Below, one piece after another: positions 13,540 through 57,651 of a stretch of DNA of 64,000 nucleotides. Below the pieces are notes generated by a model. It saw nothing but the letters and a program-made list of their open reading frames with translations, was not told where the DNA came from and searched no databases. This stretch comes from Hemiscyllium ocellatum (taxonomy: Eukaryota). Position 1 is the stretch's first letter. Each line of letters opens with the position of its first letter. Both the position numbers and the translations under genes were made by a program. The stretch is from contig NC_083417.1 of NCBI RefSeq assembly GCF_020745735.1, forward strand, positions 64,418,001-64,482,000, in the 5' to 3' direction.

Positions 13540-13629
13540 TTAAGCATTGTGGTACTTCTCCGATTTCATTGGACAACTCAACGTTAGCGCAGTATTTGTC
13601 ACCTTATCAGCGACAGCATCTTGTGCGAT
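13540..13629 (-). pseudogene. Gene A degenerate terminal cytoplasmic exon (now probably 3' UTR)
   Basis: Reads IAQDAVADKVTNTALTLSCPMKSEKYHNA* with TAA at 13542-13540. Beyond the stop it reads TECAAL and has a 1-nt deletion relative to B. Confidence 0.8.
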
Positions 13630-16600
13630 CTGTAAAGGCAGCATTTAGAAATATTGTTGAAGTAATATGGAACAGCATGTCTGCAAAGTGGTCATCACAA
13701 GGACATGGAAATGATTTTCTGTATCTCACATGGTTAATGTCAACTGAGGCAAAAGCCTTCAGTGACATCCTGACTCTCGATTTCATCTTAATATTGTAAA
13801 TTCTTCTTTGGTTATTCAGTTTTACCTCAGCGTACGTGCGTCTCCCTACTTCAAATATACGTCTTGGAGTTCTCTTGCCTCTGCTGAATTCTGCCACAGT
13901 GTATTGCACACCCTGCGACGGCGCTTCCTGCGAGGGACAGATGCAAAATATTTCATTAAGTCCCTATTTCATGTCTTCAACAATTCGTTCGCCAAGCAGA
14001 GAACAAATGTACCCTTGTCCCGAATCGCTTGCAGAATCCACGTTTCAGATATATTCGCGTAATTATAAACATTAATGCATTGTGGGCAATTTTACAAGCT
14101 AAACTTTTCTTCACGTGCATTTCGTAACACAATGTTTCAATGCCAAAAAGTGTCAGCACTGGAGAGGATTTATTTTCAATCGAAATAATGACTGAAAGTG
14201 TAAAGTGTTATTAGCTAGAAACATTTTCATAAATATGACCAGATTTTAAAAATCCAATTAACATTATTCATCAAAAAAAATTGCGCCAACTGCATTTCAA
14301 CGTCGTTGAGTGAACATTTACTTCAATAAATAACCCGAAAGCGTACAGAGATGATTAGCATATTTCTGTCATCATTACATGCGTCCCGCGTATTCTAAAC
14401 CCCTGTGGTGATGAAGGAATGAATTGTACCCTGCCAGAAATGAAGCTGGGAATGCTCAAAAGTGATGATTTTTTCATTGAAAACTAATGCTCCTGAGAAT
14501 TATTAACATTCTGATAACAAAATTATAACTATTTCTGCGTTATGAAATGGGTCTGAAACAATCTGAACTCGCTTAGAAAGTAAGCAATTGCGTTTGCACC
14601 TTTAAATCATTTGGCTTTCTCCAGAACATACTAATTCCCTTCAACCCCTTTATTGTCCTCAGACATCAACTGGATCGATAATCAAGAGTTGACAGTATGT
14701 CTTACTTCTGTTAGATCGAAGTCCATATCGCATTGCAATTATGATCACAAGCACGAGAAACGAAAATCCAAGTGCCGCACAAATTGGAGTCCTAAAACTG
14801 AGTGAACTGTTGATACAGTCTGCAAAATTAAGAGGACATTAATTGCTGGTGGTGCTTGGATAGGAATTATTAAGAACTATAAGAACCGCATCATTGAAGG
14901 GCAATGAAAAAGCAAAGATGCCAAATATTCTTTCAGTTGAATGTCAAAGTCACTTCTATTTCCAATAGATGGCAAATTCTGAATCAGTTTCTGGAATGGA
15001 TTGTTGGTTTGTACATCACAAAGGACTGTTTTGCAAAGGTCAGGACACAAAACTGGGCGATTACCCTTGGACTAAAATACTGTTCTTCTTGACTTTGTTA
15101 CGGATTAACACACGTTTTCTTGAAACTAGAGTCATGATTTCACAAGCATTTTCTTCGCTGGTCACATCAAATTCTGAAAAGGGGCGATCGGATTATGAAC
15201 GTTTTGCAAATAAGTGAACTGTCTTTTTGATATTCATTGTATAACAAAAGACATCTACTGCTTTGTAAGTTGTCGTTTTAAGACAGGACAATATATTGTC
15301 AAAGTTAATGCATTAACTTTGCCGCATCATAGACAAGTCTCATCCTCACATAAGCTTTATGTTCATTGTGAGCGCGATCCCGAAAAAGTGTGCCGTGAAT
15401 AGTTGAGAGATAATACAGTACTTGGGAAGGGATGTCTTAGAATTCTGCCCTGGATATAACCAACGGGGAATGCAGGTTGGGCGAAACAAAACAAAATAAA
15501 GACCACTCTGCAACAGGATAGGGAAAGTAGGCAGTCGTCAGGAATAAAGTATTTTTACACGTAAGCAAAACTGATGAATGAGATGAAGGCAGAAACGGAT
15601 AGAACAGCTCACGGCTGAACATTATTACTACGACAGAAATAAAGGAATTAGAACGTAAATAAGTTTTTGTTGCTTTCAACTCAAATCACAACTTAATATA
15701 ATGAATTAAAACATGGCATTTACCACGAAAACACTGCAGATTAGCTCCATAATATGCATACATTATGCGATGCATTTCGTTACATACTATAACAATCGTT
15801 AACTCGCCTTGTTGGTCTCCAGAAAGTGTGAAAATAGTGTGGACGACGACAGCAGGAGTCTTTAGGGAGACGTGAGATACCGAACAGGTATAGATGATAT
15901 TACTCGAAGGAGGTTGAGACACAGCCAAAGAACTGAATACTTCATACAAACCCTCGCCGTTCTGCACCTGATTAGTATTTATTCCGACTGTAGTTTCGGA
16001 GCTGTTTATATACCAGGCGAGAGTGAAATCGTCCGGATAAAATGGAACTGTTTCACACAGAAGGGTCAAAGAAACTGGCGAGGATTCTTTATCTAACTTG
16101 GACGTAATTTTCAGTGGTACTGGGGAAACTGCATGAAGAGAATTGAAAAAGCCAAGTTTATAGTACAAAACCGGAAAATGTTAAATTTGAGTATGCTTTT
16201 CAACCGCTCAGTTTTATCACAATCTCAGCATTCAAAGTCACAGCTTATTGTGTACATAACTTAATGTGCAAGCTTTCGAACTGTGGCATTTATTCACCAT
16301 TACTTGAAGTATCGGCTCCAATACTTGTTTTTTTATCAACAGAAAAATTTGCTCAGAAATGTTTGTCTCTCGTATTTGAATAAATTACTTCAATTGAGGC
16401 AGGGCAGTGGAAAAGAGAAAGAAAGTAATGTTCATCAGCCCTTGTGCTTTGACTCTCACATGAAGAGTAACGATGAAAATGCTCCTTGTCGTTCAAGTGG
16501 CGATTATTACGTTAGCCAAATTTCCAAACCAAAGTTTTGAAAACTCACGAAATATGTTAAATCTGTTGAACCCCAGGAGGTACAGATTATCTGTATTGTT

Positions 16601-56200: not shown

Positions 56201-57651
56201 TTTATCACAATCTCAGCATTCAAAGACACAGCTTATTGTGTACATAACTTTATGTGCAAGCTTTCGAACTGTGGCATTTATTCACCTTTACTTGAAGTAT
56301 CAGCTCCAATACTTGCTTTTTCTCAGCAGAAGAAAAGTACAATTTGCTCAGAAATGTTTGTCTCTCGTATTTGAATAAATTACTTCAATTGAGCCAGGGC
56401 AGTGGAAAAGACAAAGAAAGTAATGTTCATCAGCCCTTGTGCTTTGACTCTCACATGAAGAGTAACGATGAAAAAACTCCTTGTCGTGCAACTGACGATT
56501 ATTACGTTGGCCAAATTTCGAAACCAAAGTTTTGAAAACTCACGAAATATATTAAATCTGTTGAACCCCAGGAGCTACAGATTATCTGTATTGTTTTAGA
56601 TACTGATTGGGGGGCACTGATTCTACTGCGTTGTATGCTTCAAAATATGACTTCTTTTGCACTGCTTCCCTTCATCAGTAAGTAACTTCACTCTGATTTT
56701 CAAAACATGACGCGAAAATTATGTAAGAGCAAATTTCTGTACGCTTTAACTTCAGAAGGAGTAATTGGGGATAGTCAGGACATCAATGTCACACCACAGA
56801 CTAGCTGGATTGTTGTGCTCGCATTAACATAAGTTGCTTGTTGTCGAGTATATGTATCAGAAATTCTACTGGTAAACACCTGGTATTTAAGGTGCCTTTG
56901 GAATTATGATGGTTAATAGTTATAAAAGTTTCAGTTTTCTGCCTGTGATATTGATTGTCCAATTACAATACTTTCAAGAGAATCGAATTACTAAGTGGAG
57001 GCCACTGCTCAAATGATCAGTCCCCATGATTTAACTGCAAACGTTCATGAAATAAGCAATCAGAAAATATCTTGTTACTTCGAAATATTTCACACAGTAT
57101 CACGCTCTCACTTACCGTGCACAAATAAATGAGAACCAGTTCCATTTATTTGACCTATTCCTTCATAAATCACACCGCAGTGGTAGACTCCAGAATATTG
57201 AATGGTAACGCTCAGCAAGTTACAGAAAGCTGATGTTCCATTGGCAGCACCAACTCGTTTTCTGAAACGCTTCTGAAAATCATCATTACCAAACTGCTTC
57301 CACCAAATAACCTTTGGTTTTGAACCGGACCGAGAGCTGGGGAATCTGCATTCGAATGGAACATCCTCCCCTTGGTTCACAGTTATTTCTTTGGGCGTTT
57401 GAGTAACAATGTACGAAGTGCAATTCGCAGCTGTTAGAAACAAAGTAAGATACAGGTAACTGTCGTATACGGCATCAAGATAGAAGAATTCAATACTTCA
57501 ACAGAGAGATGCATTAATATTCTTTAAATGAACGAGGAGCTGCTTCGAAAGCATTTAATTAATTAATGCAGATCTGTCAATTTAATAATCAAGTACCGGT
57601 AAGAATAGATTCAAGTAGAATCAAACACACAAAATTCATCCTCGCTGTCAT
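53062..57651 (-). CDS. Gene B: VJ-C1-TM Ig-superfamily inhibitory receptor (SIRP-alpha-like ITIM tail); 7 exons, 375 aa
   Basis: Exons 57651-57597, 57430-57116, 56116-55796, 54810-54697, 54086-54043, 53536-53435 and 53238-53062 total 1128 nt and form one open frame with compatible phases. Confidence 0.85.
53435..53536 (-). CDS. Gene B cytoplasmic exon (VQYTTV; NTYAE|V across the junction)
   Basis: EVPSEGVQYTTVEFSRGKRTPRRIFEVERNTYAE, phase 0-0. Confidence 0.8.
54043..54086 (-). CDS. Gene B first cytoplasmic micro-exon (44 nt, phase 1-0)
   Basis: ggtatgcag|AT...ATG|gtgagt. Translates N-DGECTRQPDHCDKM and supplies exactly the phase change needed between the TM and ITIM exons. Confidence 0.8.
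54315..54439. repeat. 33-bp inverted repeat overlapping a ~60-bp direct duplication
   Basis: cagcttcatttctggcagggtacagttcattag (54315-54347) vs ctaatgaattgtaccctgccagaaatgaagctg (54407-54439), one mismatch. Confidence 0.9.
54697..54810 (-). CDS. Gene B transmembrane exon
   Basis: DSINSSLIFWTPICAAVVFSFLVLVTIIVKRYGLRSNR, 114 nt, phase 1-1. Confidence 0.88.
55796..56116 (-). CDS. Gene B Ig C1-set exon
   Basis: 321 nt with C1 signatures as in A (YTCSASH variant). GC donor AAG|gcgagt. Confidence 0.92.
57116..57430 (-). CDS. Gene B Ig V exon with J-like strand
   Basis: IVTQTPKEITVNQGEDVPFEC...WWKQ...SGVYHCGVIYEGIGQINGTGSHLFVH, 315 nt. Confidence 0.93.
57597..57651 (-). CDS. Gene B leader exon
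   Basis: MTARMNFVCLILLESILT plus G|gtactt. Confidence 0.72.

Follow-up and report, generated by a model that had tools for sequence, protein, structure and literature searches.

Does a receptor gene that has lost its signaling tail live on as a partner of its intact neighbor, or is it a gene in decay? This question is raised by a 64,000-nucleotide stretch of the genome of the shark Hemiscyllium ocellatum (NCBI RefSeq assembly GCF_020745735.1, contig NC_083417.1, positions 64,418,001 to 64,482,000, forward strand), the whole of which we refer to as the window. An initial annotation of the window had proposed two same-orientation genes ~40 kb apart, each encoding a variable (V) domain, a C1-type constant domain and a transmembrane (TM) helix, and both genes, here called A and B, were indeed found on the minus strand, approximately 39,990 bp apart, inside a tandem duplication. 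We describe below the structures of the two genes and the lesions in gene A, together with what is new here: the polarity of the deletion that uncoupled the tail of gene A, the mosaic pattern of divergence between the genes, an older parallel in the zebra shark (Stegostoma tigrinum) and the spread of the gene family in cartilaginous fish. On balance, we lean slightly towards gene A being a putative tail-less decoy or soluble partner of gene B.

Structure of Gene B

Gene B splices to a clean 1128-nt open reading frame (ORF) with the following features.

57651-53062, minus strand: gene B, 7 exons, 375 aa
57651-57597, minus strand: exon 1, signal peptide, phase-1 donor
57430-57116, minus strand: exon 2, V and joining (J) segments (VJ), V-set (Pfam E 1.2e-8), J-like motif GTGSHLFV
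56116-55796, minus strand: exon 3, C1-set (Pfam E 2e-10), GC donor AAG/GCGAGT at its end
54810-54697, minus strand: exon 4, stalk, TM helix, juxtamembrane KRYGLRSNR
54086-54043, minus strand: exon 5, 44-nt micro-exon NDGECTRQPDHCDKM, absent from gene A
53536-53435, minus strand: exon 6, tail motifs VQYTTV and NTYAE/V
53238-53062, minus strand: exon 7, tail motifs VTYTAL and TEYAAL, stop codon 53064-53062

Exon boundaries were placed from the sequence and then checked against the Stegostoma model XP_059507523 (363 aa) at the locus that we call L001, with which the exon structure of gene B agrees. The micro-exon is kept in Stegostoma (NKEECTRQPDDRDKV) and in other family members. In both window genes the V-set (E~1e-8) and C1-set (E~1e-10) matches are past the curated Pfam cut-offs, and the VJ region is germline-joined, being a single uninterrupted exon that ends NGTGSHLFVHG. 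The C1 exon of gene B has the YxCxxxH signature, and it is the only C1 exon between V and TM, as it is in gene A and the Stegostoma gene.

Two of the tail motifs of gene B, VQYTTV and VTYTAL, are canonical immunoreceptor tyrosine-based inhibitory motifs (ITIMs), fitting (S/I/V/L)xYxx(I/V/L). TEYAAL resembles an immunoreceptor tyrosine-based switch motif (ITSM), and NTYAEV, which spans the exon 6/7 junction, is ITIM/ITSM-like. An alignment of 12 family members has a common plan of leader, VJ, C1, TM, Cys-containing micro-exon and four-Tyr tail. Because this alignment shows the four-Tyr tail from chimaera to sharks, the tail of gene B is of the ancestral type, and gene B as a whole is, as judged from its predicted product, an ancestral-type, type I membrane receptor. 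At the end of exon 7 (53062-53105) the ancestral stop codon has been lost (TGA in Stegostoma, GGA in B), which adds 13 residues, and this read-through gains a fifth tail tyrosine (DNYAPA).

All splice sites of gene B are canonical bar the GC donor after the C1 exon. That donor (55794-55796 in B, 15806-15808 in A and ~11996-12003 in L001) is present in A, B and 4/4 of the Stegostoma loci looked at, and it is the one used by the annotated Stegostoma model of the full-length gene. For this reason we take it for part of a conserved GC-AG intron rather than for a defect. Two alternative donors for the C1 exon were considered and rejected: GTATGT is in phase 0 and leads to a stop codon in the TM exon, and GTAAAT adds 27 unconserved residues. 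A long open frame after exon 6 (RIYIIK...VRYRKS) was similarly rejected as the tail, as alignment with Stegostoma gives the donor GAG/GTAAAG and a separate exon 7. Retention of the intron after C1 would give a soluble V-C1 product with a read-through peptide of about 40 aa in the window genes, and of 15 aa or 3 aa in Stegostoma.

Structure of Gene A and the Loss of its Tail

The claim that one gene has a four-Tyr tail and the other a disabled one was borne out, in that gene B has a clean 375-aa coding sequence and gene A is without exon 5. The features of gene A, and the segment of gene B that it lacks, are as follows.

17656-~13455, minus strand: gene A, intact exons 1-4, no exon 5, decayed tail exons
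17656-17602, minus strand: exon 1, signal peptide
17435-17121, minus strand: exon 2, VJ
16128-15808, minus strand: exon 3, C1, same GC donor as B
14819-14706, minus strand: exon 4, stalk Cys, derived Trp-to-Arg change at the outer membrane edge, TM helix
14418-14423, minus strand: deletion scar, a single remaining TTCATT (blastn segments overlap by 6 nt)
54414-54038, minus strand: segment of B missing from A (377 bp), comprising part of intron 4 and exon 5 with its donor
13826-13927, minus strand: exon-6 relic, out of frame after TM, stop codon 13853-13851, first motif VQYTVA in B's frame
13455-13629, minus strand: exon-7 relic, with Y>N, an in-frame TAA, Y>C and a 1-nt deletion

Gene A has open exons 1-4, with splice sites that match those of gene B exactly. 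In gene B, copies of TTCATT flank the segment that gene A lacks (54414-54409 and 54037-54032), and by this repeat signature the 377-bp loss is a microhomology-mediated deletion. The Stegostoma locus is collinear with the window genes at 67-70% identity, introns included, and through the deleted segment its DNA is continuous with gene B and not with gene A. The deletion is thus derived in gene A, since Stegostoma retains the segment with its micro-exon. Intron 4 of gene B (54290-54500) contains, within the segment deleted in gene A, a ~75-bp tandem copy followed by an inverted copy, a hairpin-prone structure that may have favored the deletion.

Loss of the 44-nt exon 5 shifts the frame when the TM exon is spliced to exon 6. 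Such a transcript would encode 25 out-of-frame residues before a stop codon located 25 nt before the last junction, with a predicted product of 293 aa. Under the 50-55-nt rule for nonsense-mediated decay, a stop codon in this position would allow the transcript to escape that pathway. Read in the frame of gene B, the tail relics of gene A are VQYTVA, in which the +3 Val has changed to Ala, and VTNTAL and TECAAL, in each of which the Tyr is lost. With Stegostoma as the outgroup, exon 7 has 14 A-derived changes and 5 B-derived changes (p 0.064).

The N-glycosylation sequons of the V domains also differ. Gene B has NCT, with an extra Cys, near the N-terminus and also NGT; gene A has NVT, and NGT is lost (DGA). 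The sites compared are 57350-57430 with 17355-17435 and 57180-57200 with 17185-17205.

A Mosaic of Divergence Between the Genes

The ectodomain exons of the two genes had been estimated to be 94-97% identical. Our measurements agree, with identities of 94.3% for V (18/315 nt differ) and 97.2% for C1 (9/321). The leader is 94.5% identical, the TM exon 90.4% and the tail exons 88-89%. A two-change-point likelihood scan of the A/B alignment identified a tract of low divergence with the following extent.

15749-18074: low-divergence tract in A, promoter to C1
about 55737-58069: the same tract in B

Divergence is 3.9% (91/2325) within the tract and 7.9% (558/7049) outside it (twice the log-likelihood difference, 48.7; chi-square p 6e-11). 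The tract runs from about 420 bp upstream of the ATG to about 60 bp past the C1 exon, and so it holds the proximal promoter, leader, V, intron 2 and C1, with the TM and tail exons lying outside. Protein-level selection cannot explain this pattern because the introns are included. The simplest reading is that the tract most likely arose by gene conversion or unequal exchange after the original duplication. Lowered divergence in the ectodomain half is of a kind typical for paired receptors.

As the tract was homogenized later, the age of the pairing cannot be read from the near-identical ectodomains. The suggestion that the pair had been caught soon after the pairing event was therefore not upheld: the unconverted parts are ~8% diverged and the tail of gene A has at least 5 further lesions. 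The ectodomain near-identity looks like the product of later homogenization, not of youth.

An Older Parallel in the Zebra Shark

Three loci, L003-L005, at 9.29, 9.45 and 9.53 Mb of CM060524.1, each encode the Stegostoma protein XP_059507815 (247 aa), and the full-length ITIM gene, L001, lies at 9.61 Mb of the same sequence. The three loci hold leader, V and C1 exons, and within 10 kb downstream of them no TM, micro- or tail exon could be detected at the protein level. L003 matches L001 at 98.96% over a stretch that reaches 10 kb or more upstream and extends about 207 bp beyond the C1 exon, after which the alignment breaks into fragments of 65-71% identity. In matched segments of L003-type loci and L001, the 5' halves are 99.7% identical and the 3' halves 69-72%. 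The Stegostoma 3' halves are 63-75% identical to the window genes, a distance like that between themselves. These values indicate that the 3' halves of the tail-less Stegostoma copies are about as old as the species split, and that their ectodomain halves have been kept near-identical to the ITIM gene.

The alignment of L001 and L003 stops at the start of the L001 TM exon and resumes about 400 bp on, so the TM exon is apparently missing from the tail-less copies. Downstream tail relics have lost the first Tyr motif by an 8-bp deletion and the fourth Tyr by a substitution, and they contain frameshifting indels. The homogenized tract stops no more than about 200 bp from the C1 exon in both species. 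With this older parallel in the zebra shark, the A/B arrangement appears as one case of a recurring process. In our estimate it makes a role for tail-less copies more probable, although conversion by itself could hold such copies open.

Segments of at least 20 kb at L003-L005 are 99.9% identical to each other, which is the mark of either a very recent triplication or an artefact of the Stegostoma assembly. No neighboring marker genes were seen in the 10-kb flanks of the fetched Stegostoma loci.

Organization of the Window

Self-blastn revealed a tandem segmental duplication in the window, with 87-94.5% identity between its two units (no strand is assigned to them).

4009-20739 (approx.): duplication unit A
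36484-64000 (approx.): duplication unit B, which runs off the window
about 42516-49890 and 58940-62852: unit-B-specific insertions
28814-30221, minus strand: older pseudogene (tblastn with family proteins, E down to 1e-12)
29976-30221, minus strand: V remnant of the pseudogene, with stop codons
28814-29074, minus strand: C1 remnant of the pseudogene, with stop codons

The offsets between matching segments of the two units are 32.1, 39.6, 40.0 and 43.3 kb, and they differ because unit B has kilobase-scale insertions. About 16 kb of unique sequence separates the units. It includes the pseudogene paralog that had been proposed to lie between the genes, and at 28.8-30.2 kb we found its V and C1 remnants interrupted by stop codons. 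The remnants are nearer to other branches of the family (up to 47-49% identity) than to A and B (40-42% in C1). The best explanation for these features is a tandem array, repeating about every 40 kb, of which the window holds one part; its genes encode non-rearranging V(J)-C1-TM receptors of the immunoglobulin superfamily (IgSF) of cartilaginous fish.

Parts of the unit-B insertions are copies of an interspersed repeat that also occurs at 50-1251, 22262-25033 and 35559-36168, and at 19565-20909 of Stegostoma L001 with ~65% identity. A 160-aa ORF in the first insertion (46512-46994) has no Pfam domain. Beyond the receptor genes, Pfam matches none of the five ORFs in the window that reach 140 aa, and an Rfam search of the window was empty. 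A tblastn match at 23421-23678 was spurious, the region being low-complexity DNA that translates as a His/Thr-rich repeat. The 64-kb window contains no runs of N.

Is Gene A a Partner of Gene B?

We propose that genes A and B came from the same ancestor and that the 377-bp deletion, in removing exon 5, uncoupled the tail of gene A, whose tail exons then decayed. After the duplication the promoter-to-C1 halves were homogenized, most likely by gene conversion, and because of this gene A keeps the promoter-proximal sequence of gene B and nearly the same ectodomain. By analogy with known inhibitory receptors, ligand binding by gene B's product would lead to tyrosine phosphorylation, recruitment of SHP-type phosphatases and damped cell activation. 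Gene A, if expressed, would give a non-signaling protein. This would either be anchored in the membrane, with 34 cytoplasmic residues as a stub, or be soluble should the intron with the weak GC donor that follows C1 be retained. Either form would compete with gene B's product for ligand in the manner of a SIRP-gamma/delta-like decoy. We consider a decoy or soluble partner the somewhat more probable role for gene A, with its expression and decoy function both inferred.

Several points weigh against this proposal, and some of them are what would be expected if gene A were an unprocessed pseudogene, inactivated when exon 5 was lost and since then in slow decay, its 5' half open through conversion from gene B or because little time has passed, an alternative to which we give a substantial but lesser probability. 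Gene A has several tail lesions, and an older dead paralog lies 11 kb from it. In the A/B comparison, the Nei-Gojobori ratio of non-synonymous to synonymous rates (dN/dS) takes the value 0.99 in V (14 non-synonymous and 4 synonymous changes), 0.64 in C1, 0.88 in TM and 0.74 over exons 1-4, no value being distinguishable from 1 at such counts, and with these values purifying selection on the ectodomain of gene A is not demonstrated. Substitution density in the exons is about equal to that in the introns, and gene conversion can keep the 5' half of a dead copy intact without selection. The 805 nt that are open in gene A would have stayed so neutrally with a chance of ~0.2 by our rough estimate, which was built from the A/B substitution and indel densities, and their being open is thus weak evidence that this part of the gene is maintained. 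Furthermore, the GC donor could make splicing of the TM form inefficient in both genes, and phosphatase recruitment by the tail of gene B is deduced solely from its motifs. On the other side, the leader, V, C1 and TM exons of gene A and all their splice sites are intact. Polarized nucleotide changes are symmetric between A and B (6:7 in V and 3:4 in C1; 10:9 for amino acids), and relative-rate tests show no faster change in the ectodomain of A than in that of B, so the ectodomain of A is not decaying faster than in B, a gene that is apparently functional. Lastly, the tail-less V-C1 copies of the zebra shark have persisted and multiplied even though their 3' halves date back as far as the species split.

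A variant of the functional case is that gene A is an activating partner, its derived Arg at the TM edge recruiting an FcR-gamma/DAP12-type adaptor with an immunoreceptor tyrosine-based activation motif, in the way known for SIRP-beta, activating KIR and LILRA. The Trp-to-Arg change is derived in A, which has the stalk Cys and lacks an ITIM, and a basic residue at the outer TM edge is found in 9/13 short-tailed family members versus 4/15 ITIM-bearing ones. That association is not significant (Fisher p 0.056), however, and a test on independent pairs is underpowered. The change is also a single substitution in an exon that diverges at the background rate (9.6%), and is weak evidence. The Arg of gene A lies about one helical turn further out than the residue of its short-tailed relatives and is followed by Thr-Pro, and it may be outside the bilayer; because of this position we regard an activating role as improbable. 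The two genes could also be imagined to be haplotypes of one locus that were misassembled in tandem, for which only the general similarity of the two units speaks. The units diverge by 4-9% with dozens of indels, they have kilobase-scale unit-specific insertions and differing segment offsets (32.1-43.3 kb), and the sequence between them is unique and includes a pseudogene. Judged by these sequence features, misassembly is excluded for practical purposes.

The Family in Cartilaginous Fish

An exhaustive HMMER search with the V exon of gene B identified 94 proteins at E <= 1e-3. The best match was a fragment from Chiloscyllium punctatum (76% identity), whose contig has 90.3% DNA identity to A and B. 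Matches whose sources were looked up and that have the V-C1 arrangement come from sharks, skates, rays and a chimaera (Stegostoma, Scyliorhinus, Mustelus, Heptranchias, Heterodontus, Hypanus, Hemitrygon, Amblyraja, Pristis and Callorhinchus). In Callorhinchus many family genes lie on one scaffold. The V matches outside the cartilaginous fish, in turtles, squamates, zebrafish and bichir, are multi-VJ proteins that lack C1. Word-indexed searches with the zebra-shark protein (6 matches), the family alignment (8) and the tail region (2) gave no match outside cartilaginous fish, and the search with the tail region only gave nothing outside the chimaera.

Members of the family are already predicted in public shark annotations under automatic names. 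These names are inconsistent and include SIRP-alpha-like, SIRP-beta-1-like, tapasin-related-like, NCR3LG1-like, major histocompatibility complex (MHC) class II beta-like and Ig lambda-like, with "SIRP-alpha-like" the commonest NCBI pipeline name for the relatives. Our literature search identified no paper describing the family; a prior description is possible. A VJ-VJ-TM protein of the bichir Polypterus senegalus (KAG2469052.1) is related to the V domain and shares a 90% cluster with a 596-aa "PRC2A protein, partial". If that name stands for PRRC2A/BAT2, an MHC class III gene, this would be a hint that the bony-fish relatives are linked to the MHC.

Genes A and B are sisters in a tree built from 41 ectodomains (support by the Shimodaira-Hasegawa-like approximate likelihood ratio test, SH-aLRT, 99), and together they are sister to three Stegostoma proteins (100). 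The duplications are lineage-specific, as A and B group together beside the Stegostoma proteins. Tail state switches at least 10 times on this tree, some of the short-tailed forms in the count being isoforms or partial models. The proposal that the window holds a birth-and-death IgSF family of a cartilaginous fish is one that we can endorse, with an ITIM gene adjoining a tail-disabled paralog of near-identical ectodomain.

Relationship to the SIRPs

A profile of the family compared with PDB sequences matched antibodies first, followed by UrIg2 (1.6e-28), SIRP-alpha (3.3e-24) and SIRP-gamma (6e-21). The Stegostoma protein, as modeled by AlphaFold2, has two Ig domains, each with a predicted local distance difference test score (pLDDT) of about 90, and a disordered tail. 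When this model was searched against Swiss-Prot with Foldseek, SIRP-alpha held ranks 1-4 (E 5e-18 to 7e-16), a narrow lead with TAPBPL, CD276, PD-L1, nectins and butyrophilins close behind. The AlphaFold Database cluster search gave as its top match an "Ig-like domain-containing protein" with no further name (E 8.6e-23, 32% identity) and, below it, generic IgSF proteins. On these best matches the SIRPs are the closest named relatives of the shark family, with membership in the SIRP family itself being putative.

In both groups the V domain is N-terminal and carries a J-like motif, a C1-set domain and one TM helix follow, and to judge by its motifs the tail is a long one with four tyrosines in ITIM-like settings; both also form clusters with near-identical ectodomains and differing or no tails (PMC12975943, PMC9652883). 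They differ in that the shark family has one C1 domain and the SIRPs two (V-C1-C1), and SIRP-alpha has 14-17% identity to the Stegostoma model in the fold alignment. The motifs of the SIRP-alpha tail bind SHP-1/SHP-2, and their spacing may be like that in the shark family. The SIRPs include SIRP-alpha, which is inhibitory, SIRP-beta, which is activating, SIRP-gamma with its short tail and SIRP-delta, a soluble form (PMC12975943, PMC9652883). Their origins were described as unknown in a 2022 review, which gives clusters from mammals, chicken and Anolis (PMC9652883), and a 2026 survey places the family in Tetrapoda (PMC13262535).

A broader reading, which we offer tentatively and consider rather unlikely, is that the chondrichthyan V(J)-C1-TM family is the SIRP stem, and that selected, long-lived partnerships of inhibitory genes with tail-less or soluble copies, kept by promoter-to-C1 conversion, arose independently in at least two shark lineages. 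If true, the origin of the SIRPs would move from tetrapods to the base of jawed vertebrates. Among mammals, pairing an inhibitory receptor with a decoy or activating twin is a central plan of innate immune recognition (SIRP, KIR, LILR, Siglec), and the window locus, together with its older zebra-shark parallel, shows that plan in the oldest living jawed vertebrates. At the window locus alone, tail loss in one tandem copy is an ordinary birth-and-death step. The A/B pair, the zebra-shark set and the GC-AG intron provide concrete constructs and junctions for work on expression, ligand sharing and SHP recruitment. The VJ-C1 architecture is also of interest as a relic of antigen-receptor precursors.

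Comparison with Other Receptor Systems

The shark family is not one of Ig or T-cell receptor genes, because its VJ exon is germline-joined. Nor is it of the NKp30 type, because it has a C1 domain; NKp30 consists of a single V domain with no C1. It is similar to PRARP and NKp30/NCR3, which are likewise IgSF genes of a non-rearranging VJ type and have been discussed as antigen-receptor-precursor relics (PMC10751288). UrIg and UrIg2 share with it a germline-joined VJ followed by C1 in elasmobranchs (PMC12227049). UrIg2, however, is described as a non-rearranging shark antibody gene and has the V-C1-C2-C3 architecture (PDB 9dmx; PMC12227049), and ITIMs are unmentioned in that report, whereas the shark family of the window is a large multigene family whose members combine one C1 with a TM helix and an ITIM-bearing tail. 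Its single C1, TM helix and ITIMs are why we do not consider it to be UrIg.

The second domain of the shark proteins clears the Pfam C1-set threshold, which sets them apart from the teleost NITRs, whose second domain is I-type and not C1. NITRs belong to bony fish and have one or two Ig domains. They resemble the shark family in forming diversified clusters of genes with a non-rearranging V(J), mostly ITIM-bearing and with few activating members (PMC2442602).

The features of paired-receptor clusters that are present in the window are linked, near-identical ectodomains, the ITIM-bearing gene B and the short-tailed gene A, with the Arg of the latter at the membrane edge. KIR, LILR, Siglec-5/14 and Siglec-11/16 are paired-receptor clusters that are homogenized by gene conversion. 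Their domains are C2 or V-set/C2, in contrast to the VJ and C1 of the shark family, and the shark partner differs further in having lost signaling by exon deletion and in having no clear charged adaptor site in its TM helix. In their organization the systems are alike: in each there are tandem paralogs with a similar 5' half and a diverging TM and tail, birth-and-death evolution, and pseudogenes.

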